DNA of 64,000 nt from Paragordius varius (lineage: Eukaryota; Animalia; Nematomorpha). The notes under the pieces were generated by a model, which made no database searches, was not told the origin of the DNA, and was given only the letters and a program-made list of their open reading frames with translations. The translations under genes and the position numbers were made by a program. The stretch spans positions 1,116,001 to 1,180,000 of the forward strand of contig OZ176060.1 in the NCBI GenBank assembly GCA_964247055.1. Reading direction: 5' to 3'. Each line of letters opens with the position of its first letter. Position 1 is the stretch's first letter. Positions 1 to 32,466 of this stretch are shown one piece after another.

Positions 1-3000
1 AATATTCAAAAAATGTTCAAAAATGTCATTTTTAAACTCAAAAATTAATAAAAAATAACAAAAATAATTAAAAAATACTCAAAAACAATTAAAAACAATT
101 AGAAAATTAACAAAATTCAACTAAAAATTAAAAAAATTCTTAAAATTGTCCTATTTTTCATTGAAAAATAACATTTTTCATTCTTTATATATACATATAT
201 ATAATAACAAAAATAACAAATCAAAAATAACAAACATCACTCATTTCATCCACATACATAAATGAGAGAGAGAGAGAAACACACCCACATTCACCATGTA
301 CAACAACTACAACTACTAGTGTGTGTGTGAGAGAGTGGAGAGAGAGAGTGTGTGAGAGAGTGTAACACAACAACACTCACCACAAGAGTGATGACGTCAT
401 CACTCTTGTGGTGAGTGTTGTTGTGATGGACACTTACTCATTTAATAATGAAGAAGAAGAAGAGAAGAGTAGAGAGAGAAGAAGGTTTTTGTTGTTGATT
501 CTTGTTGACACAAACACATATATACATGAATGAATGAATGAATGAAGAGAATGTTACACTACTACTATAGAAGAATGAAGAATATTGTTGAAGAAATGAG
601 TGTTATTCTTGTTTTTCAACAATTTTTGAATAAAAATGAGTATTTTTGAGACAATTTTACTAGATTTACTAATAATTTTGTTGAAAATTAACAATTTTTA
701 TACATTTTTTGATGAAAATGAATGTTTTTTGGACAATTTTGATGAATATTTATGAATATTATTGTTAAAATTGACATTTTTGACACATTTTTGATGATTT
801 GCTCAACATTTCATGAATAAATGACTAAAAAGTTGAAGAATTTTGAGTTTTTTTCTGTTTTTTTTGACTAAACTATGAATTTTTCTCTTATTTTTCAATA
901 AATTTTGAGTTTTTTCTTGAAATTTTTCTAAAATTCTCACAAAAATGAAGAAAAATTAGAAAAATTATCATTTTTTTTGAGTAAAAATTGATTTTTTTTG
1001 AATTTTTTGAGTTAAAATTGAATATTTAAATGATAATTATCTAAAATTCTTGTAAAAATGAGTGAAAATTAGAAAAAATAAGTAAAAATTTGTTAATTTT
1101 AGTGTAAAAATTCATTTTTTCTTCTTCAAAATTGACATTACCCAATTAAAAAATGTTAAAAATAAGAAAAAACTAGAAAAAATAAGTAAAAATTCACAAA
1201 ATATTCAAAAAATGTTCAAAAATGTCATTTTTAAACTCAAAAATTAATAAAAAATAACAAAAATAATTAAAAAATACTCAAAAACAATTAAAAACAATTA
1301 GAAAATTAACAAAATTCAACTAAAAATTAAAAAAATTCTTAAAATTGTCCTATTTTTCATTGAAAAATAACATTTTTCATTCTTTATATATACATATATA
1401 TAATAACAAAAATAACAAATCAAAAATAACAAACATCACTCATTTCATCCACATACATAAATGAGAGAGAGAGAGAAACACACCCACATTCACCATGTAC
1501 AACAACTACAACTACTAGTGTGTGTGTGAGAGAGTGGAGAGAGAGAGTGTGTGAGAGAGTGTAACACAACAACACTCACCACAAGAGTGATGACGTCATC
1601 ACTCTTGTGGTGAGTGTTGTTGTGATGGACACTTACTCATTTAATAATGAAGAAGAAGAAGAGAAGAGTAGAGAGAGAAGAAGGTTTTTGTTGTTGATTC
1701 TTGTTGACACAAACACATATATACATGAATGAATGAATGAATGAAGAGAATGTTACACTACTACTATAGAAGAATGAAGAATATTGTTGAAGAAATGAGT
1801 GTTATTCTTGTTTTTCAACAATTTTTGAATAAAAATGAGTATTTTTGAGACAATTTTACTAGATTTACTAATAATTTTGTTGAAAATTAACAATTTTTAT
1901 ACATTTTTTGATGAAAATGAATGTTTTTTGGACAATTTTGATGAATATTTATGAATATTATTGTTAAAATTGACATTTTTGACACATTTTTGATGATTTG
2001 CTCAACATTTCATGAATAAATGACTAAAAAGTTGAAGAATTTTGAGTTTTTTTCTGTTTTTTTTGACTAAACTATGAATTTTTCTCTTATTTTTCAATAA
2101 ATTTTGAGTTTTTTCTTGAAATTTTTCTAAAATTCTCACAAAAATGAAGAAAAATTAGAAAAATTATCATTTTTTTTGAGTAAAAATTGATTTTTTTTGA
2201 ATTTTTTGAGTTAAAATTGAATATTTAAATGATAATTATCTAAAATTCTTGTAAAAATGAGTGAAAATTAGAAAAAATAAGTAAAAATTTGTTAATTTTA
2301 GTGTAAAAATTCATTTTTTCTTCTTCAAAATTGACATTACCCAATTAAAAAATGTTAAAAATAAGAAAAAACTAGAAAAAATAAGTAAAAATTCACAAAA
2401 TATTCAAAAAATGTTCAAAAATGTCATTTTTAAACTCAAAAATTAATAAAAAATAACAAAAATAATTAAAAAATACTCAAAAACAATTAAAAACAATTAG
2501 AAAATTAACAAAATTCAACTAAAAATTAAAAAAATTCTTAAAATTGTCCTATTTTTCATTGAAAAATAACATTTTTCATTCTTTATATATACATATATAT
2601 AATAACAAAAATAACAAATCAAAAATAACAAACATCACTCATTTCATCCACATACATAAATGAGAGAGAGAGAGAAACACACCCACATTCACCATGTACA
2701 ACAACTACAACTACTAGTGTGTGTGTGAGAGAGTGGAGAGAGAGAGTGTGTGAGAGAGTGTAACACAACAACACTCACCACAAGAGTGATGACGTCATCA
2801 CTCTTGTGGTGAGTGTTGTTGTGATGGACACTTACTCATTTAATAATGAAGAAGAAGAAGAGAAGAGTAGAGAGAGAAGAAGGTTTTTGTTGTTGATTCT
2901 TGTTGACACAAACACATATATACATGAATGAATGAATGAATGAAGAGAATGTTACACTACTACTATAGAAGAATGAAGAATATTGTTGAAGAAATGAGTG

Positions 3001-6000
3001 TTATTCTTGTTTTTCAACAATTTTTGAATAAAAATGAGTATTTTTGAGACAATTTTACTAGATTTACTAATAATTTTGTTGAAAATTAACAATTTTTATA
3101 CATTTTTTGATGAAAATGAATGTTTTTTGGACAATTTTGATGAATATTTATGAATATTATTGTTAAAATTGACATTTTTGACACATTTTTGATGATTTGC
3201 TCAACATTTCATGAATAAATGACTAAAAAGTTGAAGAATTTTGAGTTTTTTTCTGTTTTTTTTGACTAAACTATGAATTTTTCTCTTATTTTTCAATAAA
3301 TTTTGAGTTTTTTCTTGAAATTTTTCTAAAATTCTCACAAAAATGAAGAAAAATTAGAAAAATTATCATTTTTTTTGAGTAAAAATTGATTTTTTTTGAA
3401 TTTTTTGAGTTAAAATTGAATATTTAAATGATAATTATCTAAAATTCTTGTAAAAATGAGTGAAAATTAGAAAAAATAAGTAAAAATTTGTTAATTTTAG
3501 TGTAAAAATTCATTTTTTCTTCTTCAAAATTGACATTACCCAATTAAAAAATGTTAAAAATAAGAAAAAACTAGAAAAAATAAGTAAAAATTCACAAAAT
3601 ATTCAAAAAATGTTCAAAAATGTCATTTTTAAACTCAAAAATTAATAAAAAATAACAAAAATAATTAAAAAATACTCAAAAACAATTAAAAACAATTAGA
3701 AAATTAACAAAATTCAACTAAAAATTAAAAAAATTCTTAAAATTGTCCTATTTTTCATTGAAAAATAACATTTTTCATTCTTTATATATACATATATATA
3801 ATAACAAAAATAACAAATCAAAAATAACAAACATCACTCATTTCATCCACATACATAAATGAGAGAGAGAGAGAAACACACCCACATTCACCATGTACAA
3901 CAACTACAACTACTAGTGTGTGTGTGAGAGAGTGGAGAGAGAGAGTGTGTGAGAGAGTGTAACACAACAACACTCACCACAAGAGTGATGACGTCATCAC
4001 TCTTGTGGTGAGTGTTGTTGTGATGGACACTTACTCATTTAATAATGAAGAAGAAGAAGAGAAGAGTAGAGAGAGAAGAAGGTTTTTGTTGTTGATTCTT
4101 GTTGACACAAACACATATATACATGAATGAATGAATGAATGAAGAGAATGTTACACTACTACTATAGAAGAATGAAGAATATTGTTGAAGAAATGAGTGT
4201 TATTCTTGTTTTTCAACAATTTTTGAATAAAAATGAGTATTTTTGAGACAATTTTACTAGATTTACTAATAATTTTGTTGAAAATTAACAATTTTTATAC
4301 ATTTTTTGATGAAAATGAATGTTTTTTGGACAATTTTGATGAATATTTATGAATATTATTGTTAAAATTGACATTTTTGACACATTTTTGATGATTTGCT
4401 CAACATTTCATGAATAAATGACTAAAAAGTTGAAGAATTTTGAGTTTTTTTCTGTTTTTTTTGACTAAACTATGAATTTTTCTCTTATTTTTCAATAAAT
4501 TTTGAGTTTTTTCTTGAAATTTTTCTAAAATTCTCACAAAAATGAAGAAAAATTAGAAAAATTATCATTTTTTTTGAGTAAAAATTGATTTTTTTTGAAT
4601 TTTTTGAGTTAAAATTGAATATTTAAATGATAATTATCTAAAATTCTTGTAAAAATGAGTGAAAATTAGAAAAAATAAGTAAAAATTTGTTAATTTTAGT
4701 GTAAAAATTCATTTTTTCTTCTTCAAAATTGACATTACCCAATTAAAAAATGTTAAAAATAAGAAAAAACTAGAAAAAATAAGTAAAAATTCACAAAATA
4801 TTCAAAAAATGTTCAAAAATGTCATTTTTAAACTCAAAAATTAATAAAAAATAACAAAAATAATTAAAAAATACTCAAAAACAATTAAAAACAATTAGAA
4901 AATTAACAAAATTCAACTAAAAATTAAAAAAATTCTTAAAATTGTCCTATTTTTCATTGAAAAATAACATTTTTCATTCTTTATATATACATATATATAA
5001 TAACAAAAATAACAAATCAAAAATAACAAACATCACTCATTTCATCCACATACATAAATGAGAGAGAGAGAGAAACACACCCACATTCACCATGTACAAC
5101 AACTACAACTACTAGTGTGTGTGTGAGAGAGTGGAGAGAGAGAGTGTGTGAGAGAGTGTAACACAACAACACTCACCACAAGAGTGATGACGTCATCACT
5201 CTTGTGGTGAGTGTTGTTGTGATGGACACTTACTCATTTAATAATGAAGAAGAAGAAGAGAAGAGTAGAGAGAGAAGAAGGTTTTTGTTGTTGATTCTTG
5301 TTGACACAAACACATATATACATGAATGAATGAATGAATGAAGAGAATGTTACACACAACTACTAAAGAAGAATGAAGAAGAAATTGTTGAAGAAGTGAT
5401 GAATATTCTTGTTTTTCAACAATTTTTGAATAAAAATGAGTATTTTTGAGACAATTTTACTAGATTTACTAATAATTTTGTTGAAAATTAACAATTTTTA
5501 TACATTTTTTGATGAAAATGAATGTTTTTTGGACAATTTTGATGAATATTTATGAATATTATTGTTAAAATTGACATTTTTGACACATTTTTGATGATTT
5601 GCTCAACATTTCATGAATAAATGACTAAAAAGTTGAAGAATTTTGAGTTTTTTTCTGTTTTTTTTGACTAAACTATGAATTTTTCTCTTATTTTTCAATA
5701 AATTTTGAGTTTTTTCTTGAAATTTTTCTAAAATTCTCACAAAAATGAAGAAAAATTAGAAAAATTATCATTTTTTTTGAGTAAAAATTGATTTTTTTTG
5801 AATTTTTTGAGTTAAAATTGAATATTTAAATGATAATTATCTAAAATTCTTGTAAAAATGAGTGAAAATTAGAAAAAATAAGTAAAAATTTGTTAATTTT
5901 AGTGTAAAAATTCATTTTTTCTTCTTCAAAATTGACATTACCCAATTAAAAAATGTTAAAAATAAGAAAAAACTAGAAAAAATAAGTAAAAATTCACAAA

Positions 6001-9000
6001 ATATTCAAAAAATGTTCAAAAATGTCATTTTTAAACTCAAAAATTAATAAAAAATAACAAAAATAATTAAAAAATACTCAAAAACAATTAAAAACAATTA
6101 GAAAATTAACAAAATTCAACTAAAAATTAAAAAAATTCTTAAAATTGTCCTATTTTTCATTGAAAAATAACATTTTTCATTCTTTATATATACATATATA
6201 TAATAACAAAAATAACAAATCAAAAATAACAAACATCACTCATTTCATCCACATACATAAATGAGAGAGAGAGAGAAACACACCCACATTCACCATGTAC
6301 AACAACTACAACTACTAGTGTGTGTGTGAGAGAGTGGAGAGAGAGAGTGTGTGAGAGAGTGTAACACAACAACACTCACCACAAGAGTGATGACGTCATC
6401 ACTCTTGTGGTGAGTGTTGTTGTGATGGACACTTACTCATTTAATAATGAAGAAGAAGAAGAGAAGAGTAGAGAGAGAAGAAGGTTTTTGTTGTTGATTC
6501 TTGTTGACACAAACACATATATACATGAATGAATGAATGAATGAAGAGAATGTTACACACAACTACTAAAGAAGAATGAAGAAGAAATTGTTGAAGAAGT
6601 GATGAATATTCTTGTTTTTCAACAATTTTTGAATAAAAATGAGTATTTTTGAGACAATTTTACTAGATTTACTAATAATTTTGTTGAAAATTAACAATTT
6701 TTATACATTTTTTGATGAAAATGAATGTTTTTTGGACAATTTTGATGAATATTTATGAATATTATTGTTAAAATTGACATTTTTGACACATTTTTGATGA
6801 TTTGCTCAACATTTCATGAATAAATGACTAAAAAGTTGAAGAATTTTGAGTTTTTTTCTGTTTTTTTTGACTAAACTATGAATTTTTCTCTTATTTTTCA
6901 ATAAATTTTGAGTTTTTTCTTGAAATTTTTCTAAAATTCTCACAAAAATGAAGAAAAATTAGAAAAATTATCATTTTTTTTGAGTAAAAATTGATTTTTT
7001 TTGAATTTTTTGAGTTAAAATTGAATATTTAAATGATAATTATCTAAAATTCTTGTAAAAATGAGTGAAAATTAGAAAAAATAAGTAAAAATTTGTTAAT
7101 TTTAGTGTAAAAATTCATTTTTTCTTCTTCAAAATTGACATTACCCAATTAAAAAATGTTAAAAATAAGAAAAAACTAGAAAAAATAAGTAAAAATTCAC
7201 AAAATATTCAAAAAATGTTCAAAAATGTCATTTTTAAACTCAAAAATTAATAAAAAATAACAAAAATAATTAAAAAATACTCAAAAACAATTAAAAACAA
7301 TTAGAAAATTAACAAAATTCAACTAAAAATTAAAAAAATTCTTAAAATTGTCCTATTTTTCATTGAAAAATAACATTTTTCATTCTTTATATATACATAT
7401 ATATAATAACAAAAATAACAAATCAAAAATAACAAACATCACTCATTTCATCCACATACATAAATGAGAGAGAGAGAGAAACACACCCACATTCACCATG
7501 TACAACAACTACAACTACTAGTGTGTGTGTGAGAGAGTGGAGAGAGAGAGTGTGTGAGAGAGTGTAACACAACAACACTCACCACAAGAGTGATGACGTC
7601 ATCACTCTTGTGGTGAGTGTTGTTGTGATGGACACTTACTCATTTAATAATGAAGAAGAAGAAGAGAAGAGTAGAGAGAGAAGAAGGTTTTTGTTGTTGA
7701 TTCTTGTTGACACAAACACATATATACATGAATGAATGAATGAATGAAGAGAATGTTACACACAACTACTAAAGAAGAATGAAGAAGAAATTGTTGAAGA
7801 AGTGATGAATATTCTTGTTTTTCAACAATTTTTGAATAAAAATGAGTATTTTTGAGACAATTTTACTAGATTTACTAATAATTTTGTTGAAAATTAACAA
7901 TTTTTATACATTTTTTGATGAAAATGAATGTTTTTTGGACAATTTTGATGAATATTTATGAATATTATTGTTAAAATTGACATTTTTGACACATTTTTGA
8001 TGATTTGCTCAACATTTCATGAATAAATGACTAAAAAGTTGAAGAATTTTGAGTTTTTTTCTGTTTTTTTTGACTAAACTATGAATTTTTCTCTTATTTT
8101 TCAATAAATTTTGAGTTTTTTCTTGAAATTTTTCTAAAATTCTCACAAAAATGAAGAAAAATTAGAAAAATTATCATTTTTTTTGAGTAAAAATTGATTT
8201 TTTTTGAATTTTTTGAGTTAAAATTGAATATTTAAATGATAATTATCTAAAATTCTTGTAAAAATGAGTGAAAATTAGAAAAAATAAGTAAAAATTTGTT
8301 AATTTTAGTGTAAAAATTCATTTTTTCTTCTTCAAAATTGACATTACCCAATTAAAAAATGTTAAAAATAAGAAAAAACTAGAAAAAATAAGTAAAAATT
8401 CACAAAATATTCAAAAAATGTTCAAAAATGTCATTTTTAAACTCAAAAATTAATAAAAAATAACAAAAATAATTAAAAAATACTCAAAAACAATTAAAAA
8501 CAATTAGAAAATTAACAAAATTCAACTAAAAATTAAAAAAATTCTTAAAATTGTCCTATTTTTCATTGAAAAATAACATTTTTCATTCTTTATATATACA
8601 TATATATAATAACAAAAATAACAAATCAAAAATAACAAACATCACTCATTTCATCCACATACATAAATGAGAGAGAGAGAGAAACACACCCACATTCACC
8701 ATGTACAACAACTACAACTACTAGTGTGTGTGTGAGAGAGTGGAGAGAGAGAGTGTGTGAGAGAGTGTAACACAACAACACTCACCACAAGAGTGATGAC
8801 GTCATCACTCTTGTGGTGAGTGTTGTTGTGATGGACACTTACTCATTTAATAATGAAGAAGAAGAAGAGAAGAGTAGAGAGAGAAGAAGGTTTTTGTTGT
8901 TGATTCTTGTTGACACAAACACATATATACATGAATGAATGAATGAATGAAGAGAATGTTACACACAACTACTAAAGAAGAATGAAGAAGAAATTGTTGA

Positions 9001-12000
9001 AGAAGTGATGAATATTCTTGTTTTTCAACAATTTTTGAATAAAAATGAGTATTTTTGAGACAATTTTACTAGATTTACTAATAATTTTGTTGAAAATTAA
9101 CAATTTTTATACATTTTTTGATGAAAATGAATGTTTTTTGGACAATTTTGATGAATATTTATGAATATTATTGTTAAAATTGACATTTTTGACACATTTT
9201 TGATGATTTGCTCAACATTTCATGAATAAATGACTAAAAAGTTGAAGAATTTTGAGTTTTTTTCTGTTTTTTTTGACTAAACTATGAATTTTTCTCTTAT
9301 TTTTCAATAAATTTTGAGTTTTTTCTTGAAATTTTTCTAAAATTCTCACAAAAATGAAGAAAAATTAGAAAAATTATCATTTTTTTTGAGTAAAAATTGA
9401 TTTTTTTTGAATTTTTTGAGTTAAAATTGAATATTTAAATGATAATTATCTAAAATTCTTGTAAAAATGAGTGAAAATTAGAAAAAATAAGTAAAAATTT
9501 GTTAATTTTAGTGTAAAAATTCATTTTTTCTTCTTCAAAATTGACATTACCCAATTAAAAAATGTTAAAAATAAGAAAAAACTAGAAAAAATAAGTAAAA
9601 ATTCACAAAATATTCAAAAAATGTTCAAAAATGTCATTTTTAAACTCAAAAATTAATAAAAAATAACAAAAATAATTAAAAAATACTCAAAAACAATTAA
9701 AAACAATTAGAAAATTAACAAAATTCAACTAAAAATTAAAAAAATTCTTAAAATTGTCCTATTTTTCATTGAAAAATAACATTTTTCATTCTTTATATAT
9801 ACATATATATAATAACAAAAATAACAAATCAAAAATAACAAACATCACTCATTTCATCCACATACATAAATGAGAGAGAGAGAGAAACACACCCACATTC
9901 ACCATGTACAACAACTACAACTACTAGTGTGTGTGTGAGAGAGTGGAGAGAGAGAGTGTGTGAGAGAGTGTAACACAACAACACTCACCACAAGAGTGAT
10001 GACGTCATCACTCTTGTGGTGAGTGTTGTTGTGATGGACACTTACTCATTTAATAATGAAGAAGAAGAAGAGAAGAGTAGAGAGAGAAGAAGGTTTTTGT
10101 TGTTGATTCTTGTTGACACAAACACATATATACATGAATGAATGAATGAATGAAGAGAATGTTACACTACTACTATAGAAGAATGAAGAATATTGTTGAA
10201 GAAATGAGTGTTATTCTTGTTTTTCAACAATTTTTGAATAAAAATGAGTATTTTTGAGACAATTTTACTAGATTTACTAATAATTTTGTTGAAAATTAAC
10301 AATTTTTATACATTTTTTGATGAAAATGAATGTTTTTTGGACAATTTTGATGAATATTTATGAATATTATTGTTAAAATTGACATTTTTGACACATTTTT
10401 GATGATTTGCTCAACATTTCATGAATAAATGACTAAAAAGTTGAAGAATTTTGAGTTTTTTTCTGTTTTTTTTGACTAAACTATGAATTTTTCTCTTATT
10501 TTTCAATAAATTTTGAGTTTTTTCTTGAAATTTTTCTAAAATTCTCACAAAAATGAAGAAAAATTAGAAAAATTATCATTTTTTTTGAGTAAAAATTGAT
10601 TTTTTTTGAATTTTTTGAGTTAAAATTGAATATTTAAATGATAATTATCTAAAATTCTTGTAAAAATGAGTGAAAATTAGAAAAAATAAGTAAAAATTTG
10701 TTAATTTTAGTGTAAAAATTCATTTTTTCTTCTTCAAAATTGACATTACCCAATTAAAAAATGTTAAAAATAAGAAAAAACTAGAAAAAATAAGTAAAAA
10801 TTCACAAAATATTCAAAAAATGTTCAAAAATGTCATTTTTAAACTCAAAAATTAATAAAAAATAACAAAAATAATTAAAAAATACTCAAAAACAATTAAA
10901 AACAATTAGAAAATTAACAAAATTCAACTAAAAATTAAAAAAATTCTTAAAATTGTCCTATTTTTCATTGAAAAATAACATTTTTCATTCTTTATATATA
11001 CATATATATAATAACAAAAATAACAAATCAAAAATAACAAACATCACTCATTTCATCCACATACATAAATGAGAGAGAGAGAGAAACACACCCACATTCA
11101 CCATGTACAACAACTACAACTACTAGTGTGTGTGTGAGAGAGTGGAGAGAGAGAGTGTGTGAGAGAGTGTAACACAACAACACTCACCACAAGAGTGATG
11201 ACGTCATCACTCTTGTGGTGAGTGTTGTTGTGATGGACACTTACTCATTTAATAATGAAGAAGAAGAAGAGAAGAGTAGAGAGAGAAGAAGGTTTTTGTT
11301 GTTGATTCTTGTTGACACAAACACATATATACATGAATGAATGAATGAATGAAGAGAATGTTACACTACTACTATAGAAGAATGAAGAATATTGTTGAAG
11401 AAATGAGTGTTATTCTTGTTTTTCAACAATTTTTGAATAAAAATGAGTATTTTTGAGACAATTTTACTAGATTTACTAATAATTTTGTTGAAAATTAACA
11501 ATTTTTATACATTTTTTGATGAAAATGAATGTTTTTTGGACAATTTTGATGAATATTTATGAATATTATTGTTAAAATTGACATTTTTGACACATTTTTG
11601 ATGATTTGCTCAACATTTCATGAATAAATGACTAAAAAGTTGAAGAATTTTGAGTTTTTTTCTGTTTTTTTTGACTAAACTATGAATTTTTCTCTTATTT
11701 TTCAATAAATTTTGAGTTTTTTCTTGAAATTTTTCTAAAATTCTCACAAAAATGAAGAAAAATTAGAAAAATTATCATTTTTTTTGAGTAAAAATTGATT
11801 TTTTTTGAATTTTTTGAGTTAAAATTGAATATTTAAATGATAATTATCTAAAATTCTTGTAAAAATGAGTGAAAATTAGAAAAAATAAGTAAAAATTTGT
11901 TAATTTTAGTGTAAAAATTCATTTTTTCTTCTTCAAAATTGACATTACCCAATTAAAAAATGTTAAAAATAAGAAAAAACTAGAAAAAATAAGTAAAAAT

Positions 12001-14483
12001 TCACAAAATATTCAAAAAATGTTCAAAAATGTCATTTTTAAACTCAAAAATTAATAAAAAATAACAAAAATAATTAAAAAATACTCAAAAACAATTAAAA
12101 ACAATTAGAAAATTAACAAAATTCAACTAAAAATTAAAAAAATTCTTAAAATTGTCCTATTTTTCATTGAAAAATAACATTTTTCATTCTTTATATATAC
12201 ATATATATAATAACAAAAATAACAAATCAAAAATAACAAACATCACTCATTTCATCCACATACATAAATGAGAGAGAGAGAGAAACACACCCACATTCAC
12301 CATGTACAACAACTACAACTACTAGTGTGTGTGTGAGAGAGTGGAGAGAGAGAGTGTGTGAGAGAGTGTAACACAACAACACTCACCACAAGAGTGATGA
12401 CGTCATCACTCTTGTGGTGAGTGTTGTTGTGATGGACACTTACTCATTTAATAATGAAGAAGAAGAAGAGAAGAGTAGAGAGAGAAGAAGGTTTTTGTTG
12501 TTGATTCTTGTTGACACAAACACATATATACATGAATGAATGAATGAATGAAGAGAATGTTACACACAACTACTAAAGAAGAATGAAGAAGAAATTGTTG
12601 AAGAAGTGATGAATATTCTTGTTTTTCAACAATTTTTGAATAAAAATGAGTATTTTTGAGACAATTTTACTAGATTTACTAATAATTTTGTTGAAAATTA
12701 ACAATTTTTATACATTTTTTGATGAAAATGAATGTTTTTTGGACAATTTTGATGAATATTTATGAATATTATTGTTAAAATTGACATTTTTGACACATTT
12801 TTGATGATTTGCTCAACATTTCATGAATAAATGACTAAAAAGTTGAAGAATTTTGAGTTTTTTTCTGTTTTTTTTGACTAAACTATGAATTTTTCTCTTA
12901 TTTTTCAATAAATTTTGAGTTTTTTCTTGAAATTTTTCTAAAATTCTCACAAAAATGAAGAAAAATTAGAAAAATTATCATTTTTTTTGAGTAAAAATTG
13001 ATTTTTTTTGAATTTTTTGAGTTAAAATTGAATATTTAAATGATAATTATCTAAAATTCTTGTAAAAATGAGTGAAAATTAGAAAAAATAAGTAAAAATT
13101 TGTTAATTTTAGTGTAAAAATTCATTTTTTCTTCTTCAAAATTGACATTACCCAATTAAAAAATGTTAAAAATAAGAAAAAACTAGAAAAAATAAGTAAA
13201 AATTCACAAAATATTCAAAAAATGTTCAAAAATGTCATTTTTAAACTCAAAAATTAATAAAAAATAACAAAAATAATTAAAAAATACTCAAAAACAATTA
13301 AAAACAATTAGAAAATTAACAAAATTCAACTAAAAATTAAAAAAATTCTTAAAATTGTCCTATTTTTCATTGAAAAATAACATTTTTCATTCTTTATATA
13401 TACATATATATAATAACAAAAATAACAAATCAAAAATAACAAACATCACTCATTTCATCCACATACATAAATGAGAGAGAGAGAGAAACACACCCACATT
13501 CACCATGTACAACAACTACAACTACTAGTGTGTGTGTGAGAGAGTGGAGAGAGAGAGTGTGTGAGAGAGTGTAACACAACAACACTCACCACAAGAGTGA
13601 TGACGTCATCACTCTTGTGGTGAGTGTTGTTGTGATGGACACTTACTCATTTAATAATGAAGAAGAAGAAGAGAAGAGTAGAGAGAGAAGAAGGTTTTTG
13701 TTGTTGATTCTTGTTGACACAAACACATATATACATGAATGAATGAATGAATGAAGAGAATGTTACACTACTACTATAGAAGAATGAAGAATATTGTTGA
13801 AGAAATGAGTGTTATTCTTGTTTTTCAACAATTTTTGAATAAAAATGAGTATTTTTGAGACAATTTTACTAGATTTACTAATAATTTTGTTGAAAATTAA
13901 CAATTTTTATACATTTTTTGATGAAAATGAATGTTTTTTGGACAATTTTGATGAATATTTATGAATATTATTGTTAAAATTGACATTTTTGACACATTTT
14001 TGATGATTTGCTCAACATTTCATGAATAAATGACTAAAAAGTTGAAGAATTTTGAGTTTTTTTCTGTTTTTTTTGACTAAACTATGAATTTTTCTCTTAT
14101 TTTTCAATAAATTTTGAGTTTTTTCTTGAAATTTTTCTAAAATTCTCACAAAAATGAAGAAAAATTAGAAAAATTATCATTTTTTTTGAGTAAAAATTGA
14201 TTTTTTTTGAATTTTTTGAGTTAAAATTGAATATTTAAATGATAATTATCTAAAATTCTTGTAAAAATGAGTGAAAATTAGAAAAAATAAGTAAAAATTT
14301 GTTAATTTTAGTGTAAAAATTCATTTTTTCTTCTTCAAAATTGACATTACCCAATTAAAAAATGTTAAAAATAAGAAAAAACTAGAAAAAATAAGTAAAA
14401 ATTCACAAAATATTCAAAAAATGTTCAAAAATGTCATTTTTAAACTCAAAAATTAATAAAAAATAACAAAAATAATTAAAAAA
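1..14483. repeat. Tandem array, subfamily A/B: 12 head-to-tail units of 1199 bp (A) or 1203 bp (B), order AAAABBBBAABA; probably continues left of the window
   Basis: The unit start 'aatattcaaaaaatgttc' recurs at 1, 1200, 2399, 3598, 4797, 6000, 7203, 8406, 9609, 10808, 12007, 13210 and 14409. By eye the units are identical except for one ~50-bp variant tract (B). Confidence 0.97.
366..425. repeat. Perfect 60-bp palindrome (30-bp arms, no loop), first of 22 copies
   Basis: cacaacaacactcaccacaagagtgatgac|gtcatcactcttgtggtgagtgttgttgtg, checked base by base. A/B copies start at 366, 1565, 2764, 3963, 5162, 6365, 7568, 8771, 9974, 11173, 12372, 13575. C copies (58 bp) start at 14796+1177n (n=0-7). 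The D/E variants have 26-bp arms and a 2-nt loop. Confidence 0.98.
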
Positions 14484-17400
14484 ATAAAAAAAAATATTCA
14501 AAAAATATCAAAAAATACTCAAAAAATAAAAAAATTAACAAAATTTCACAAAAAATAACAATTTTTCATTTAAAAATTCTTAAAATTGTCCTATTTTTCA
14601 TTCAAAAATAACATTTTTCATCTTTCTATATATATACATATAAGAATAAAAATAACAAAAATAACAATCATCACTCATTTCATCACATTCATAATTGAGA
14701 GAGAATGAGAGAGAGAGAGTGATGTGCAACACCAACAACAACAACTACAAGAATGATGTGTGTGTGAGAGTGAGAGTGAGTGTGTGTGTACAACTACAAC
14801 AACACTCACCACAAGAGTGATGACGTCATCACTCTTGTGGTGAGTGTTGTTGTTGTGAAGAAGAATATTATTATTATTATTATTAGTGAAGAAGAATAAG
14901 AGAAGAGAGAGAAGAAGGTTTTTGTTGTTGATTCTTGTTGAGACACACACACACATACATGATTAAATGAATGAATGATGAAAATGTTACTCTACTACTA
15001 CTAAAGAAGAATGAAGAAGAAATTGTTGAAGAAATGAGTGTCATTCTTGTTTTTATACTATTTTTTGAATGAAAATGACATTTTTGGACAATTTTTACTA
15101 GAATTATTAATATTTTTGTTGAAAATTGCCATTTTTGACACTTTTAAGGTTGATTTTTTCAATAATTCTTGAATAAATGTGTTAAAAGTTAGAAAAATTA
15201 AGATTTTTACATTAAAATTTGTCTTTTTTTCTAGAAAAATTCATTTTTTTCTCTAATTTTTGATTAAAAAGATGATTTTTTCTTAATTTTTGAATAAAAA
15301 ATGAATTTTTAGTTGAAATTTATCAAAAATTCTTGAAAAAATGAGTGAAAAATTCATAAATTAACACTTTTTTTGATGAAAAAATCATTTTTTTGAATAT
15401 TTATGACAAAAAATTGAATTTAATCTTGAAATTTAGCAGAAATTCTTCAAAAAATGAGTGAAAATTACAAAAATTCCGAATTTTTTGAATAAGAATCAAT
15501 TATTTCTCACTCAAAATTGAGAAATTTAATCAAAAAATGAATAAAAACTAGAAAAAATGTCAAAAAATAAGTAAAATATCCACAAAAAATTCAAAAATTG
15601 TTCAAAAATGTCATTTATAAACCAAAAAAATAATAAAAAATAACAAAAACAATTGAAAAAATAAAAAAAAATATTCAAAAAATATCAAAAAATACTCAAA
15701 AAATAAAAAAATTAACAAAATTTCACAAAAAATAACAATTTTTCATTTAAAAATTCTTAAAATTGTCCTATTTTTCATTCAAAAATAACATTTTTCATCT
15801 TTCTATATATATACATATAAGAATAAAAATAACAAAAATAACAATCATCACTCATTTCATCACATTCATAATTGAGAGAGAATGAGAGAGAGAGAGTGAT
15901 GTGCAACACCAACAACAACAACTACAAGAATGATGTGTGTGTGAGAGTGAGAGTGAGTGTGTGTGTACAACTACAACAACACTCACCACAAGAGTGATGA
16001 CGTCATCACTCTTGTGGTGAGTGTTGTTGTTGTGAAGAAGAATATTATTATTATTATTATTAGTGAAGAAGAATAAGAGAAGAGAGAGAAGAAGGTTTTT
16101 GTTGTTGATTCTTGTTGAGACACACACACACATACATGATTAAATGAATGAATGATGAAAATGTTACTCTACTACTACTAAAGAAGAATGAAGAAGAAAT
16201 TGTTGAAGAAATGAGTGTCATTCTTGTTTTTATACTATTTTTTGAATGAAAATGACATTTTTGGACAATTTTTACTAGAATTATTAATATTTTTGTTGAA
16301 AATTGCCATTTTTGACACTTTTAAGGTTGATTTTTTCAATAATTCTTGAATAAATGTGTTAAAAGTTAGAAAAATTAAGATTTTTACATTAAAATTTGTC
16401 TTTTTTTCTAGAAAAATTCATTTTTTTCTCTAATTTTTGATTAAAAAGATGATTTTTTCTTAATTTTTGAATAAAAAATGAATTTTTAGTTGAAATTTAT
16501 CAAAAATTCTTGAAAAAATGAGTGAAAAATTCATAAATTAACACTTTTTTTGATGAAAAAATCATTTTTTTGAATATTTATGACAAAAAATTGAATTTAA
16601 TCTTGAAATTTAGCAGAAATTCTTCAAAAAATGAGTGAAAATTACAAAAATTCCGAATTTTTTGAATAAGAATCAATTATTTCTCACTCAAAATTGAGAA
16701 ATTTAATCAAAAAATGAATAAAAACTAGAAAAAATGTCAAAAAATAAGTAAAATATCCACAAAAAATTCAAAAATTGTTCAAAAATGTCATTTATAAACC
16801 AAAAAAATAATAAAAAATAACAAAAACAATTGAAAAAATAAAAAAAAATATTCAAAAAATATCAAAAAATACTCAAAAAATAAAAAAATTAACAAAATTT
16901 CACAAAAAATAACAATTTTTCATTTAAAAATTCTTAAAATTGTCCTATTTTTCATTCAAAAATAACATTTTTCATCTTTCTATATATATACATATAAGAA
17001 TAAAAATAACAAAAATAACAATCATCACTCATTTCATCACATTCATAATTGAGAGAGAATGAGAGAGAGAGAGTGATGTGCAACACCAACAACAACAACT
17101 ACAAGAATGATGTGTGTGTGAGAGTGAGAGTGAGTGTGTGTGTACAACTACAACAACACTCACCACAAGAGTGATGACGTCATCACTCTTGTGGTGAGTG
17201 TTGTTGTTGTGAAGAAGAATATTATTATTATTATTATTAGTGAAGAAGAATAAGAGAAGAGAGAGAAGAAGGTTTTTGTTGTTGATTCTTGTTGAGACAC
17301 ACACACACATACATGATTAAATGAATGAATGATGAAAATGTTACTCTACTACTACTAAAGAAGAATGAAGAAGAAATTGTTGAAGAAATGAGTGTCATTC

Positions 17401-20400
17401 TTGTTTTTATACTATTTTTTGAATGAAAATGACATTTTTGGACAATTTTTACTAGAATTATTAATATTTTTGTTGAAAATTGCCATTTTTGACACTTTTA
17501 AGGTTGATTTTTTCAATAATTCTTGAATAAATGTGTTAAAAGTTAGAAAAATTAAGATTTTTACATTAAAATTTGTCTTTTTTTCTAGAAAAATTCATTT
17601 TTTTCTCTAATTTTTGATTAAAAAGATGATTTTTTCTTAATTTTTGAATAAAAAATGAATTTTTAGTTGAAATTTATCAAAAATTCTTGAAAAAATGAGT
17701 GAAAAATTCATAAATTAACACTTTTTTTGATGAAAAAATCATTTTTTTGAATATTTATGACAAAAAATTGAATTTAATCTTGAAATTTAGCAGAAATTCT
17801 TCAAAAAATGAGTGAAAATTACAAAAATTCCGAATTTTTTGAATAAGAATCAATTATTTCTCACTCAAAATTGAGAAATTTAATCAAAAAATGAATAAAA
17901 ACTAGAAAAAATGTCAAAAAATAAGTAAAATATCCACAAAAAATTCAAAAATTGTTCAAAAATGTCATTTATAAACCAAAAAAATAATAAAAAATAACAA
18001 AAACAATTGAAAAAATAAAAAAAAATATTCAAAAAATATCAAAAAATACTCAAAAAATAAAAAAATTAACAAAATTTCACAAAAAATAACAATTTTTCAT
18101 TTAAAAATTCTTAAAATTGTCCTATTTTTCATTCAAAAATAACATTTTTCATCTTTCTATATATATACATATAAGAATAAAAATAACAAAAATAACAATC
18201 ATCACTCATTTCATCACATTCATAATTGAGAGAGAATGAGAGAGAGAGAGTGATGTGCAACACCAACAACAACAACTACAAGAATGATGTGTGTGTGAGA
18301 GTGAGAGTGAGTGTGTGTGTACAACTACAACAACACTCACCACAAGAGTGATGACGTCATCACTCTTGTGGTGAGTGTTGTTGTTGTGAAGAAGAATATT
18401 ATTATTATTATTATTAGTGAAGAAGAATAAGAGAAGAGAGAGAAGAAGGTTTTTGTTGTTGATTCTTGTTGAGACACACACACACATACATGATTAAATG
18501 AATGAATGATGAAAATGTTACTCTACTACTACTAAAGAAGAATGAAGAAGAAATTGTTGAAGAAATGAGTGTCATTCTTGTTTTTATACTATTTTTTGAA
18601 TGAAAATGACATTTTTGGACAATTTTTACTAGAATTATTAATATTTTTGTTGAAAATTGCCATTTTTGACACTTTTAAGGTTGATTTTTTCAATAATTCT
18701 TGAATAAATGTGTTAAAAGTTAGAAAAATTAAGATTTTTACATTAAAATTTGTCTTTTTTTCTAGAAAAATTCATTTTTTTCTCTAATTTTTGATTAAAA
18801 AGATGATTTTTTCTTAATTTTTGAATAAAAAATGAATTTTTAGTTGAAATTTATCAAAAATTCTTGAAAAAATGAGTGAAAAATTCATAAATTAACACTT
18901 TTTTTGATGAAAAAATCATTTTTTTGAATATTTATGACAAAAAATTGAATTTAATCTTGAAATTTAGCAGAAATTCTTCAAAAAATGAGTGAAAATTACA
19001 AAAATTCCGAATTTTTTGAATAAGAATCAATTATTTCTCACTCAAAATTGAGAAATTTAATCAAAAAATGAATAAAAACTAGAAAAAATGTCAAAAAATA
19101 AGTAAAATATCCACAAAAAATTCAAAAATTGTTCAAAAATGTCATTTATAAACCAAAAAAATAATAAAAAATAACAAAAACAATTGAAAAAATAAAAAAA
19201 AATATTCAAAAAATATCAAAAAATACTCAAAAAATAAAAAAATTAACAAAATTTCACAAAAAATAACAATTTTTCATTTAAAAATTCTTAAAATTGTCCT
19301 ATTTTTCATTCAAAAATAACATTTTTCATCTTTCTATATATATACATATAAGAATAAAAATAACAAAAATAACAATCATCACTCATTTCATCACATTCAT
19401 AATTGAGAGAGAATGAGAGAGAGAGAGTGATGTGCAACACCAACAACAACAACTACAAGAATGATGTGTGTGTGAGAGTGAGAGTGAGTGTGTGTGTACA
19501 ACTACAACAACACTCACCACAAGAGTGATGACGTCATCACTCTTGTGGTGAGTGTTGTTGTTGTGAAGAAGAATATTATTATTATTATTATTAGTGAAGA
19601 AGAATAAGAGAAGAGAGAGAAGAAGGTTTTTGTTGTTGATTCTTGTTGAGACACACACACACATACATGATTAAATGAATGAATGATGAAAATGTTACTC
19701 TACTACTACTAAAGAAGAATGAAGAAGAAATTGTTGAAGAAATGAGTGTCATTCTTGTTTTTATACTATTTTTTGAATGAAAATGACATTTTTGGACAAT
19801 TTTTACTAGAATTATTAATATTTTTGTTGAAAATTGCCATTTTTGACACTTTTAAGGTTGATTTTTTCAATAATTCTTGAATAAATGTGTTAAAAGTTAG
19901 AAAAATTAAGATTTTTACATTAAAATTTGTCTTTTTTTCTAGAAAAATTCATTTTTTTCTCTAATTTTTGATTAAAAAGATGATTTTTTCTTAATTTTTG
20001 AATAAAAAATGAATTTTTAGTTGAAATTTATCAAAAATTCTTGAAAAAATGAGTGAAAAATTCATAAATTAACACTTTTTTTGATGAAAAAATCATTTTT
20101 TTGAATATTTATGACAAAAAATTGAATTTAATCTTGAAATTTAGCAGAAATTCTTCAAAAAATGAGTGAAAATTACAAAAATTCCGAATTTTTTGAATAA
20201 GAATCAATTATTTCTCACTCAAAATTGAGAAATTTAATCAAAAAATGAATAAAAACTAGAAAAAATGTCAAAAAATAAGTAAAATATCCACAAAAAATTC
20301 AAAAATTGTTCAAAAATGTCATTTATAAACCAAAAAAATAATAAAAAATAACAAAAACAATTGAAAAAATAAAAAAAAATATTCAAAAAATATCAAAAAA

Positions 20401-23400
20401 TACTCAAAAAATAAAAAAATTAACAAAATTTCACAAAAAATAACAATTTTTCATTTAAAAATTCTTAAAATTGTCCTATTTTTCATTCAAAAATAACATT
20501 TTTCATCTTTCTATATATATACATATAAGAATAAAAATAACAAAAATAACAATCATCACTCATTTCATCACATTCATAATTGAGAGAGAATGAGAGAGAG
20601 AGAGTGATGTGCAACACCAACAACAACAACTACAAGAATGATGTGTGTGTGAGAGTGAGAGTGAGTGTGTGTGTACAACTACAACAACACTCACCACAAG
20701 AGTGATGACGTCATCACTCTTGTGGTGAGTGTTGTTGTTGTGAAGAAGAATATTATTATTATTATTATTAGTGAAGAAGAATAAGAGAAGAGAGAGAAGA
20801 AGGTTTTTGTTGTTGATTCTTGTTGAGACACACACACACATACATGATTAAATGAATGAATGATGAAAATGTTACTCTACTACTACTAAAGAAGAATGAA
20901 GAAGAAATTGTTGAAGAAATGAGTGTCATTCTTGTTTTTATACTATTTTTTGAATGAAAATGACATTTTTGGACAATTTTTACTAGAATTATTAATATTT
21001 TTGTTGAAAATTGCCATTTTTGACACTTTTAAGGTTGATTTTTTCAATAATTCTTGAATAAATGTGTTAAAAGTTAGAAAAATTAAGATTTTTACATTAA
21101 AATTTGTCTTTTTTTCTAGAAAAATTCATTTTTTTCTCTAATTTTTGATTAAAAAGATGATTTTTTCTTAATTTTTGAATAAAAAATGAATTTTTAGTTG
21201 AAATTTATCAAAAATTCTTGAAAAAATGAGTGAAAAATTCATAAATTAACACTTTTTTTGATGAAAAAATCATTTTTTTGAATATTTATGACAAAAAATT
21301 GAATTTAATCTTGAAATTTAGCAGAAATTCTTCAAAAAATGAGTGAAAATTACAAAAATTCCGAATTTTTTGAATAAGAATCAATTATTTCTCACTCAAA
21401 ATTGAGAAATTTAATCAAAAAATGAATAAAAACTAGAAAAAATGTCAAAAAATAAGTAAAATATCCACAAAAAATTCAAAAATTGTTCAAAAATGTCATT
21501 TATAAACCAAAAAAATAATAAAAAATAACAAAAACAATTGAAAAAATAAAAAAAAATATTCAAAAAATATCAAAAAATACTCAAAAAATAAAAAAATTAA
21601 CAAAATTTCACAAAAAATAACAATTTTTCATTTAAAAATTCTTAAAATTGTCCTATTTTTCATTCAAAAATAACATTTTTCATCTTTCTATATATATACA
21701 TATAAGAATAAAAATAACAAAAATAACAATCATCACTCATTTCATCACATTCATAATTGAGAGAGAATGAGAGAGAGAGAGTGATGTGCAACACCAACAA
21801 CAACAACTACAAGAATGATGTGTGTGTGAGAGTGAGAGTGAGTGTGTGTGTACAACTACAACAACACTCACCACAAGAGTGATGACGTCATCACTCTTGT
21901 GGTGAGTGTTGTTGTTGTGAAGAAGAATATTATTATTATTATTATTAGTGAAGAAGAATAAGAGAAGAGAGAGAAGAAGGTTTTTGTTGTTGATTCTTGT
22001 TGAGACACACACACACATACATGATTAAATGAATGAATGATGAAAATGTTACTCTACTACTACTAAAGAAGAATGAAGAAGAAATTGTTGAAGAAATGAG
22101 TGTCATTCTTGTTTTTATACTATTTTTTGAATGAAAATGACATTTTTGGACAATTTTTACTAGAATTATTAATATTTTTGTTGAAAATTGCCATTTTTGA
22201 CACTTTTAAGGTTGATTTTTTCAATAATTCTTGAATAAATGTGTTAAAAGTTAGAAAAATTAAGATTTTTACATTAAAATTTGTCTTTTTTTCTAGAAAA
22301 ATTCATTTTTTTCTCTAATTTTTGATTAAAAAGATGATTTTTTCTTAATTTTTGAATAAAAAATGAATTTTTAGTTGAAATTTATCAAAAATTCTTGAAA
22401 AAATGAGTGAAAAATTCATAAATTAACACTTTTTTTGATGAAAAAATCATTTTTTTGAATATTTATGACAAAAAATTGAATTTAATCTTGAAATTTAGCA
22501 GAAATTCTTCAAAAAATGAGTGAAAATTACAAAAATTCCGAATTTTTTGAATAAGAATCAATTATTTCTCACTCAAAATTGAGAAATTTAATCAAAAAAT
22601 GAATAAAAACTAGAAAAAATGTCAAAAAATAAGTAAAATATCCACAAAAAATTCAAAAATTGTTCAAAAATGTCATTTATAAACCAAAAAAATAATAAAA
22701 AATAACAAAAACAATTGAAAAAATAAAAAAAAATATTCAAAAAATATCAAAAAATACTCAAAAAATAAAAAAATTAACAAAATTTCACAAAAAATAACAA
22801 TTTTTCATTTAAAAATTCTTAAAATTGTCCTATTTTTCATTCAAAAATAACATTTTTCATCTTTCTATATATATACATATAAGAATAAAAATAACAAAAA
22901 TAACAATCATCACTCATTTCATCACATTCATAATTGAGAGAGAATGAGAGAGAGAGAGTGATGTGCAACACCAACAACAACAACTACAAGAATGATGTGT
23001 GTGTGAGAGTGAGAGTGAGTGTGTGTGTACAACTACAACAACACTCACCACAAGAGTGATGACGTCATCACTCTTGTGGTGAGTGTTGTTGTTGTGAAGA
23101 AGAATATTATTATTATTATTATTAGTGAAGAAGAATAAGAGAAGAGAGAGAAGAAGGTTTTTGTTGTTGATTCTTGTTGAGACACACACACACATACATG
23201 ATTAAATGAATGAATGATGAAAATGTTACTCTACTACTACTAAAGAAGAATGAAGAAGAAATTGTTGAAGAAATGAGTGTCATTCTTGTTTTTATACTAT
23301 TTTTTGAATGAAAATGACATTTTTGGACAATTTTTACTAGAATTATTAATATTTTTGTTGAAAATTGCCATTTTTGACACTTTTAAGGTTGATTTTTTCA

Positions 23401-24160
23401 ATAATTCTTGAATAAATGTGTTAAAAGTTAGAAAAATTAAGATTTTTACATTAAAATTTGTCTTTTTTTCTAGAAAAATTCATTTTTTTCTCTAATTTTT
23501 GATTAAAAAGATGATTTTTTCTTAATTTTTGAATAAAAAATGAATTTTTAGTTGAAATTTATCAAAAATTCTTGAAAAAATGAGTGAAAAATTCATAAAT
23601 TAACACTTTTTTTGATGAAAAAATCATTTTTTTGAATATTTATGACAAAAAATTGAATTTAATCTTGAAATTTAGCAGAAATTCTTCAAAAAATGAGTGA
23701 AAATTACAAAAATTCCGAATTTTTTGAATAAGAATCAATTATTTCTCACTCAAAATTGAGAAATTTAATCAAAAAATGAATAAAAACTAGAAAAAATGTC
23801 AAAAAATAAGTAAAATATCCACAAAAAATTCAAAAATTGTTCAAAAATGTCATTTATAAACCAAAAAAATAATAAAAAATAACAAAAACAATTGAAAAAA
23901 TAAAAAAAAATATTCAAAAAATATCAAAAAATACTCAAAAAATAAAAAAATTAACAAAATTTCACAAAAAATAACAATTTTTCATTTAAAAATTCTTAAA
24001 ATTGTCCTATTTTTCATTCAAAAATAACATTTTTCATCTTTCTATATATATACATATAAGAATAAAAATAACAAAAATAACAATCATCACTCATTTCATC
24101 ACATTCATAATTGAGAGAGAATGAGAGAGAGAGAGTGATGTGCAACACCAACAACAACAA
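14484..24160. repeat. Tandem array, subfamily C: ~8.2 units of 1177 bp, homologous to but clearly diverged from A/B
   Basis: Identical ORF-track hits occur every 1177 bp (14675, 15852 ... 22914). The units carry the same central palindrome and similar GA/CA/TGAA blocks as A/B, with different AT-rich flanks. Confidence 0.96.
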
Positions 24161-26000
24161 CAAGAGTGATGTGTATGTGTGTGAGAGAGTGAGTGGAGAG
24201 AGAGATGAGTGTGAGTGTAACAACAACACACACAACAAGAGTGATGAATCACTCTTGTTGTGTGTGTTGTTGTGAAGAAGAATATTATTATTAGTAGTAG
24301 AAGAAGAAGAAGAATTGAGTAGAGAGAGAAGAATGTTTTTGTTGATGATTCTTGTTGAGACACAAACACATATATACATGAATGAATGAATGAATGAATG
24401 ATGAAAATGTTACACTACTACTACTAAAGAAGAATGAAGAATATTGTTGAAGAAATGATGAATATTCTTGATTTTCAATAATTTTTGAATAAAAATCAAG
24501 ATTTTTGGACAATATTACTAAAATTATTAATATTTTTGTGTAAAATTAACAATTTTTACACTTTTTTTGAACATTTTACTAAAAATTCATGAATAATAGA
24601 GTTAAAATCTTGAAAATTAAGAATTTTTCAGTGAAAATTGAGTTTTTTTCTAGATTTTTGAATGAAAATTTATTTTTTTCTCTAATTTTTGACAAAAAAT
24701 GACGATTTTTGGACAATTTTAATGAAAAACAAGAATATTTTTGTATGAAAATGACATTTTTGACACTTTTTTTGATGATTTACTCGATAATTTTGAAAAA
24801 ATGAACAAAAATCTTGAAAAATTAAGAATTTTCTCAGTAAAAATTCACTTTTTTTCAAATTTTACAGTAAAAAATGAATATTTTCTCTAATTTTTGATTG
24901 AAAAAAATGAATTTTAAGTTGAAATTTAACAAAAATTGTCAAAAAAGTGAGAAAAAATGAGTAAAAATAAGAAAAATTTGCTAAATTTACTGTAAAAATC
25001 AATTTTTTAGAATAAAAACTGAATTATTTCTACTTAAAAATGATAATTTTAATTTAAAAATGAGTAAAAAGTAGAAAAAAATAATAAAAAATATCCAAAA
25101 TACACAAAAAATATTCATAAAATCATCAAAAACGTCATTTTTAAACAAAAATACCTTCAAAATTAATAATTTTAATCAAAAAATCATCAATTTTAATCAA
25201 AAAATACTCAAAATACTCAAAAAATGAATAAAATTAAAAAAAAATATTAATAAAATATTAAAATTGTCCTACATTTCATTCAAAAATAACAATTTTTCAT
25301 TCAAAAATAACACTTTTCATTCTTCTCTATATATTATATATACATATATATATAATAACAATATAACAACTAATAATAACAAATCTTCACTCATTTCATC
25401 CATCAAAAATGAGAGAGAGAGAGAGATGTGCAGCAACAACAACAACTACAACAACAAGAGTGATGTGTATGTGTGTGAGAGAGTGAGTGGAGAGAGAGAT
25501 GAGTGTGAGTGTAACAACAACACACACAACAAGAGTGATGAATCACTCTTGTTGTGAGTGTTGTTGTGAAGAAGAATATTATTATTATTAGTAGTAGAAG
25601 AAGAAGAAGAATTGAGTAGAGAGAGAAGAATGTTTTTGTTGTTGATTCTTGTTGACACAGACACATATACATGATTGAATGAATGAATGATGAAAATGTT
25701 ACACTACTACTACTAAAGAAGAATGATGAATATTGTTGAAGAAATGATGAATATTCTTGTTTTTCAACAATTTTTTGAATAAAAAGAAGGTTTTTTGACA
25801 CATTTTTACTAAATTTATGAATAATATTGTTTAAAAATGAATATTTTGACACTTTTTTGAATATTTACTCAAGAATTTTAATCAAATTATTAATATTTTT
25901 GTTGAAATTTGACATTTTTGATATTTTTTAAGGTTTTTCTAATGAAAATTCATTAATAAATGACTAATTTTTGAAAAATTTTGAATTTTTTGATTAAAAA
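24161..26000. repeat. Two divergent edge units (D, E) of the array, period ~1.29 kb, decaying rightwards
   Basis: Homologous cores carry variant palindromes at 24220-24273 and 25514-25567. The right boundary is approximate. Confidence 0.85.
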
Positions 26001-28310: not shown

Positions 28311-28569
28311 TTAAAAAAAAATAAATAAATAAATATTATCATAAATAATTAATATTAATAATAAATTATTGTATTTTAATGAAAATTAATGGAAATTAAT
28401 TATTTTAAGACAAATATTATAATAAATTAATACAATAAAATAAAAATAAAAAAAATAAAAAAAAATAAAAAATTAAAAAAAATGCGAAAAATAAAAAATT
28501 AATTAAACCATCAATATAAAATATAATTATATTAACTGATAAAAAATTGATTAAAAAAAATAAAAAAGT

Positions 28570-32339: not shown

Positions 32340-32466
32340 AAAACGTCAACATACAAAGCTCATGCATTCATTCGCCATATGATTTAAATTTTTTGAATAT
32401 CAGCTGATTCTATCGCTAGAAAATTTTATTTTTATATAATTATAAAAAATGAAAAATAAGTTTTTA
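32340..32466 (+). promoter_or_regulatory. Candidate core promoter / 5' UTR of the collagen gene
   Basis: GC-elevated island just upstream of the start codon, with an Inr-like TCATTC at 32368 and CAGCTG at 32401. The evidence is positional only. Confidence 0.3.

Follow-up and report, generated by a model that had tools for sequence, protein, structure and literature searches.

Template switching within quasi-palindromes (the Ripley model; Loytynoja and Goldman 2017, PMC5453318; Monttinen and Loytynoja 2022, PMC8794818) perfects and extends inverted repeats and gives compensatory changes in one step (PMC8794818, PMC5453318, PMC13100816). In Nematomorpha, it has been proposed as the origin of perfect palindromes in the mitochondrial genome (PMC6649704). 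Here we describe a nuclear palindrome of the nematomorph Paragordius varius (assembly of 110.6 Mb, 44 contigs). It is repeated in a satellite array at the left end of a 64,000-nucleotide stretch of DNA, called the window in what follows (contig OZ176060.1, hereafter C11; C11:1,116,001-1,180,000). In this satellite, the two arms of the palindrome change together from one copy to another.

The satellite palindrome shares with template-switch products the one-step multi-base changes that make the arms complementary, the extension of the arms into former flank and the compensatory pairs without intermediates. Moreover, in yeast promoters inverted-repeat expansion is seeded by the palindromic site of a dimeric factor (PMC13100816), and a putative site of this kind occupies the centre of the satellite palindrome. 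In contrast with these cases, a single tandem family shows the outcome 92 times here, with no fewer than ten symmetric versions, and the event itself is read from the pattern. The mitochondrial palindromes (PMC6649704; PMC10380579) have perfect arms and few imperfect intermediates as well, and were read as the result of active conversion or template switching. They are scattered inside protein-coding genes with up to 142 bp per arm, whereas the satellite palindrome is nuclear and non-coding, has arms of 26-30 bp, occupies a fixed place in the unit and lies near a spliced collagen gene. Concerted evolution of inverted-repeat arms is also found in the large palindromes of the human and ape Y and X chromosomes (cited in PMC6649704). 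Those have arms of kilobases to megabases with a spacer and undergo conversion by recombination; the arms described here do not exceed 30 bp and have no spacer. Finally, monomers of centromeric satellites show dyad symmetry and predicted non-B DNA (Kasinathan and Henikoff 2018, PMC5889037). Their dyads are shorter than 10 bp and occur chromosome-wide, unlike the present satellite, which is found at two loci only.

No nuclear satellite with many symmetric versions of a palindrome was found in the literature searched. The class of mechanism discussed below is already known. The general organisation of the array resembles that of the macrosatellites DXZ4 and D4Z4, in which a kilobase-sized unit is present in tens of copies at one or two loci, with a G+C content above that of the surroundings and a conserved factor site in each unit. 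There is no sequence relation with these macrosatellites, which carry CTCF sites or a gene and have no long perfect palindrome. The array may be regarded as the nuclear equivalent of the perfect but unexplained palindromes found in hairworm mitochondria. As such, it offers an accessible locus at which to ask if a single repair activity is responsible for both.

A palindrome at a fixed place in each satellite unit

A repeat finder detected 22 inverted repeats between positions 357 and 25567 of the window, with arms 0-2 bases apart (Table 1). This agrees with a first-pass annotation, made from the sequence of the window, which had reported 22 tandem copies of a long perfect palindrome. Twelve of these are carried by A/B units and are spaced by 1199 or 1203 bp; eight, spaced by 1177 bp, are carried by C units, and the last two are in units D and E. 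As single strands, the palindromes are predicted to fold with energies of -26 to -36.5 kcal/mol (z = -8 to -10), values which were equalled by 0 of 200 shuffled sequences. The array extends to the left beyond the window by 47 further units, up to C11:1,054.6 kb. Pattern and DNA searches over the complete assembly defined a family of 92 units at two places, 69 of them at about 1,054.6-1,141.6 kb of C11 and 23, in the opposite orientation, at 3,225.6-3,252.5 kb of a second contig (C10). The unit is about 1.2 kb long, with lengths of 1034 to 1385 bp across the family; a tandem unit of about 1 kb or more at two loci corresponds to the organisation of a macrosatellite.

Each unit consists of a central segment of about 450 bp, richer in G+C, and of an AT-rich spacer that is poorly alignable. 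The central 491 bp of units from different subfamilies are 75-84% identical. The A/B and C units have the same 58-bp palindrome in a central 491 bp that is just 81% identical, as had been claimed from the first inspection. The differences described earlier for the edge units D and E were also found. In D, two arm positions are altered on both sides and a 4-bp central deletion leaves an asymmetric GA, which abolishes the cAMP response element (CRE) octamer present at the centre of the other types; pairing is perfect over the 26-nt arms. Unit E has one mismatch in addition, at a polymorphic site of the family, where the left arm is that of one version and the right arm that of another. At a distance of 75 bp upstream of their palindrome, units D and E also contain an isolated copy of the inner sequence of the left arm (window 24162 and 25456), which has no right-arm partner; a degenerate form of it occurs in the other units.

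Table 1. Position of the palindromes and of other features in the window
Feature	Position	Strand	Details and basis
Satellite array, right-hand 22 units	1-25900	.	Unit 1177-1294 bp; right end from homology map
A/B palindrome, 30+30 nt, perfect	366-425	.	Repeat finder; DNA fold -36.5 kcal/mol, z -10.4
Recurrences of the A/B palindrome, first half	1565-1624, 2764-2823, 3963-4022, 5162-5221, 6365-6424, 7568-7627	.	
Recurrences of the A/B palindrome, second half	8771-8830, 9974-10033, 11173-11232, 12372-12431, 13575-13634	.	
20-bp core with CRE octamer at the dyad centre	386-405	.	Identical in 86 of 92 units
Second well-conserved block, 60-210 bp right of the dyad	455-605	+	Conservation profile, nucleotide diversity by block
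C palindrome, 29+29 nt, perfect	14796-14853	.	
Recurrences of the C palindrome	15973-16030, 17150-17207, 18327-18384, 19504-19561, 20681-20738, 21858-21915, 23035-23092	.	
D palindrome, perfect 26-nt arms round asymmetric GA	24220-24273	.	
E palindrome, as D with one mismatch	25514-25567	.	
Non-repeat flank between array and collagen gene	26114-33837	.	Inverted collinearity with the flank of the C10 array, 70-81% identity
Two collagen triple-helix exons, 108 bp each, of the downstream gene	50509-50616 and 54220-54327	+	Both PF01391 above cut-off

The two arms of the palindrome change together

The first-pass annotation had proposed that the symmetry is actively maintained, with the two arms changing together. 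This proposal is strongly supported by the comparison of all 92 genomic copies. The 20-bp core plus 16 nt of each arm is perfectly symmetric in 80 of them. Nevertheless, the 16-19 bases beyond the core exist in at least ten distinct symmetric versions, with 12 of 19 arm positions being variable. The length of the palindrome ranges from 52 to 60 bp and that of its arms from 26 to 30 nt in all versions. Going outward from the core, the two arms are complementary in 88-100% of units for positions 1-18 and in 76% for position 19; from position 20, the value drops to about 25%, as expected by chance. The limit of symmetry is therefore sharp and lies 29-30 bp from the centre.

The association between arms was then compared with several controls. 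Eighteen distinct palindromes occur in the family and 10 of these are symmetric; when the right arms were permuted 10,000 times, symmetric palindromes numbered 1.9 on average and never more than 7. In an alignment of 88 units, 96.6% of the cells are paired, and double-sided changes affect ten pairs (51 cells). None of 500 shuffles reached such a value, and slid controls gave at most three double-sided pairs. No pair in this alignment varies on one side only and just two cells are of the G-U type. Mirror positions, although 30-48 bp apart, are strongly associated (V = 0.84, 0.87, 0.87 and 1.0), as compared to V = 0.30-0.54 for variable positions separated by 4-5 nt in the same arm and to a background r2 of about 0.04 between sites of the unit 25-50 bp apart. 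Mirror association greatly exceeds both values. Taken together, these comparisons show that relatedness of the copies cannot explain the symmetry.

These results bear on the simplest explanation, according to which the array is a plain satellite in which palindromes perfect by chance were amplified, symmetry reflecting recent descent. Large blocks of identical units do exist (12 A/B units, 8 C units and 7 of another type), and unequal exchange and conversion are clearly active throughout the unit. However, recent descent does not account for at least ten symmetric versions, nor for the mirror association far above that of closer neighbours in the same arm, nor for values exceeding all permutation and slid controls. 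In addition, three sites with two states each are found in six of the eight possible combinations, all of them symmetric. We therefore regard this explanation as highly improbable.

Copying between arms and selection as possible causes of the symmetry

The nature of the changes gives information on how symmetry may be kept. Among the double-sided changes, CG to AU and UA to AU require transversions on both sides, with no wobble intermediate. Insertions and deletions can also be symmetric. A deletion of 3+3 bp affects the core of one unit (C11:1092233), and a strongly divergent version, the 'catcaaat' version, differs in length by 2 nt and is still perfect over 29-30 nt. In two versions, the arm includes a GATGG motif that belongs to the flank elsewhere, and the complement of this motif is present at the left side. 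Clustered changes that raise complementarity, indels and extension of the arm into former flank are the features of template-switch products. Transversion pairs without a wobble path, together with symmetric indels, argue for copying in one step rather than for stepwise compensation; they fit only the former and so separate the two processes.

The asymmetric units are also informative. Most of them are chimeras, with the left arm of one version and the right arm of another. One asymmetric unit, with mismatches at three sites as well as in the core, has been amplified to three tandem copies on C10, and such amplification without penalty argues against strong selection on each unit. Asymmetric units are more frequent in the smaller array (8 of 23 on C10 versus 4 of 69 on C11, p = 0.0013) and cluster at the ends of the arrays, which is the usual pattern where homogenisation is weakest.

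In a tree based on the flanks, 12-17 changes of the palindrome per site are required, for left and right arms alike, and the complex divergent version is found at four distinct positions. The scattering of palindrome versions on this tree indicates that whole palindromes pass between units as cassettes. The unit tree is itself a mosaic, association between sites decaying within 25-50 bp.

Overall, we consider it probable that symmetry results from arm-to-arm copying at the DNA level, together with cassette-like conversion among units. One arm would be repeatedly copied from the other, thereby keeping the drifting outer arms complementary, either by template switching during replication of the quasi-palindrome or by repair templated by an intrastrand hairpin. 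Short-tract conversion would additionally swap whole palindromes between units, and the GATGG flank would have been taken into the arm through copying. The nearly invariant core may carry an extra constraint. Both the copying mechanism and the constraint on the core are what we infer from the pattern of variation. With 92 copies, at least ten symmetric versions and a dozen asymmetric ones, the family amounts to a natural replicate experiment on palindrome perfection.

The other cause put forward in the first-pass annotation was selection on a hairpin or a dimeric site. In this explanation, asymmetric units are purged by selection acting on a bZIP-type dimer site with extended contacts, on the target of a cruciform-binding protein or on an RNA hairpin. 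Of the two proposed causes, conversion between arms fits the data better and stepwise selection fits them worse. Independent mutation followed by selection could not produce the symmetric indels, and the double changes, transversions with no viable intermediate, were accompanied by just two G-U cells. The threefold amplification of asymmetric units is likewise not expected, and with 92 redundant units the selective pressure on any one of them would be very weak. The constancy of arm length in all versions favours selection, as does the retention of both paralogous arrays since a duplication whose flanks are now only 68-84% identical. On the other hand, the outer 19 bp vary freely, which a protein reading the sequence would not tolerate, and the footprint of a bZIP protein is far below 58 bp. 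A hairpin RNA, also suggested earlier, found no support as a known RNA family or as a microRNA. In a microRNA, the conserved part should be the 22-nt arm; here the loop-proximal 10 nt of the stem are fixed and the remainder is variable, the opposite pattern. No known RNA or protein content was found by Rfam at gathering score over the entire window, by a tRNA search or in lists of open reading frames (ORFs). At a permissive E-value, Rfam matches to one unit were generic hairpins only, the best scoring 37.8 bits versus a cut-off of 95. Taking into account the invariance of the core and the depletion of rare variants described below, we view selection as a possible, though unlikely, main cause.

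Several observations weigh against copying between arms as a sufficient explanation. Rare variants were counted in anchored, gap-free sequences; an earlier count from a multiple sequence alignment, which had shown no depletion, was inflated by alignment gaps. Five rare cells out of 2112 were found in the inner arms, whereas the gap-free columns within the conserved block have a rate of 0.0085, which amounts to a depletion of about 3.5-fold (p = 3e-4). Of these five cells, four belong to a single symmetric variant and the fifth is unpaired. When one arm converts the other, half of the new mutations are lost and the rest are doubled, so that the density of rare variants should not fall. The depletion thus requires a second process besides copying, either selection that eliminates new variants or additional conversion between units, for which the palindrome would be a favoured site. 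In this respect, copying alone is insufficient. Secondly, the core is the least diverse part of the unit and keeps its sole CpG, which looks like constraint. Thirdly, the same unpaired T is found at position 6 outside the core, in the same relative arm, in units beside the homologous ends of both arrays (C11:1055968 and C10:3252479). If these edge units are orthologous, the unpaired T is possibly older than the duplication of the arrays; an asymmetry would then have been kept since that event, and correction would not be uniformly fast. Fourthly, the 82 kb of neighbouring non-array DNA contain no G/C-containing perfect palindrome with arms of at least 10, and the process is therefore not visibly genome-wide. 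Finally, a G/C-rich centre is unfavourable for cruciform extrusion. The satellite is best presented as a clean natural example of palindrome upkeep, not as a proven functional element.

The core of the palindrome resembles a bZIP-dimer site

The 20-bp core has a nucleotide diversity (pi) of 0.025, the lowest of any 20-bp window in the unit. By comparison, pi is 0.14-0.18 in the palindrome arms versus 0.146 in the other conserved block. This equality shows that the arm sequence itself is not frozen. Just outside the arms, microsatellite-like stretches are very variable (pi of 0.40-0.43). The exceptions to the core sequence are one substitution common to three tandem C10 units, the symmetric 3+3-bp deletion, which keeps the central octamer, and the 4-bp central deletion of D and E. 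The palindromic octamer TGACGTCA occupies the dyad centre of 89 of the 92 units and is lost in D and E.

The composition of the unit gives the core a singular place. CG and GC dinucleotides both occur at 0.07 of expectation in the unit, and the sole CpG of the 1199-bp A unit is located at the dyad centre (395-396). A near-invariant core with a retained CpG suggests some constraint there, and the core might serve to bind a dimer or to nucleate a hairpin. More generally, CG and GC are at 0.07-0.12 of expectation and GG at 0.24 in the satellite, nearly every G or C being isolated. In neighbouring non-array DNA, dinucleotides made of two C/G bases are in excess (1.6-3.4).

Judged by its sequence, the core would be a CRE-type site for a bZIP dimer. 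Its central 14-mer is identical, letter for letter, to the HT-SELEX (high-throughput systematic evolution of ligands by exponential enrichment) consensus tabulated for the bZIP factor BATF3 (PMC5449588). The genome encodes at least seven bZIP_1 domains. The 12-mer of the core occurs 86 times in the genome, all occurrences being inside the satellite. The dimeric protein site proposed in the first-pass annotation agrees with the core, but a 58-bp symmetry with a variable outer sequence is not required by such a site. These features of the core, together with the bZIP domains and the low density of rare variants in the inner arms, also speak in favour of selection. The best clue to a function is this putative CRE-type core, which both paralogous arrays have retained next to collagen genes.

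A broader possibility, which we consider unlikely, is that the palindromes do work of their own and are not by-products. Some 90 sites that form a structure or bind a dimer, retained upstream of both collagen copies since the old duplication, would then make up a regulatory, replication or chromatin-organising array; alternatively, a palindrome-perfecting repair specific to the hairworm lineage would operate in both nucleus and mitochondria.

The two arrays are paralogues at two loci

Homology of the array ends at position 25877 of the window, and non-array homology to C10 begins at 26114. The neighbourhoods of the C11 and C10 arrays are collinear on either side of the array, in inverted orientation, with 68-84% identity. 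The homologous surroundings include the 5' part of a collagen gene on one side and, on the opposite side, an element in which mini-exons are repeated. Such collinear inverted flanks show that the arrays are paralogues, derived from an inverted segmental duplication that is old and spans more than 50 kb. A copy of the collagen gene is found a few kb downstream of each array. The duplicated stretches compared with C10 were 26114-33837 of the window and C11:1,036-1,051 kb. Orthologous pairs of units could not be resolved between C11 and C10, the nearest units being 11-17% apart and lacking collinearity, with the exception of an approximate positional match at the collagen-side edge.

This distribution bears on the last group of explanations, in which the palindrome is what remains of a mobile or rolling-circle element (foldback, MITE-like, that is resembling a miniature inverted-repeat transposable element, Helitron end or viral origin), or marks a centromere, a replication origin or a programmed break site. 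Long terminal or origin palindromes are typical of mobile and rolling-circle elements, and the dyad is indeed sharp-edged and at a fixed place in each unit. No dispersed copy was found by DNA search of the assembly, the 92 first-look candidates being exactly the 92 units. The units contain no ORF of at least 90 aa save low-complexity ones, and no constant flanking duplication is seen, the immediate flanks being variable. The 20-mer of the core had no match in viral contigs. A foldback or rolling-circle origin, which had been envisaged in the first-pass annotation, is thus not supported. The same applies to a centromere-like role, given that the family occupies two loci only, among 44 contigs. 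As for a break site, the two recent block junctions in the window are located about 850 and about 1100 bp after a dyad centre, not at one. Association is not lower across the dyad either, in a test of low power, association being near background beyond 50 bp everywhere. Altogether, an origin or role of this group appears very unlikely.

In metagenomes, the 20-mer of the core gave seven exact matches (Joint Genome Institute contigs, 38-51% G+C) with unrelated flanks; three of these contigs are the same sequence. All seven matches are considered unrelated.

Other features of the window

Outside the array, the window is extremely AT-rich, with 7-15% G+C. Both 108-bp collagen exons (Table 1) have GT-AG borders. 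The 3' end of a 108-bp exon, with its donor site, is repeated at least two more times in the next intron (window 50590-51349). Further on, the intron (window 51400-54200) is full of a repeat family of about 110 bp built on short palindromes of the AAACCGGTTT type; its G+C content, about 32%, is much above that of the surroundings.

The mini-exon element is 2.5 kb long and contains a mini-exon-like segment reading LDGALNPDLKKD, followed by GTGAGT, every 230-250 bp. It is located at the left edge of the C11 array (C11:1,049.5-1,051.3 kb) and at the homologous edge of the C10 array (C10:3,254.2-3,256.9 kb). It is also found in a 5.3-kb gap inside the C11 array (C11:1,066.8-1,067.8 kb).

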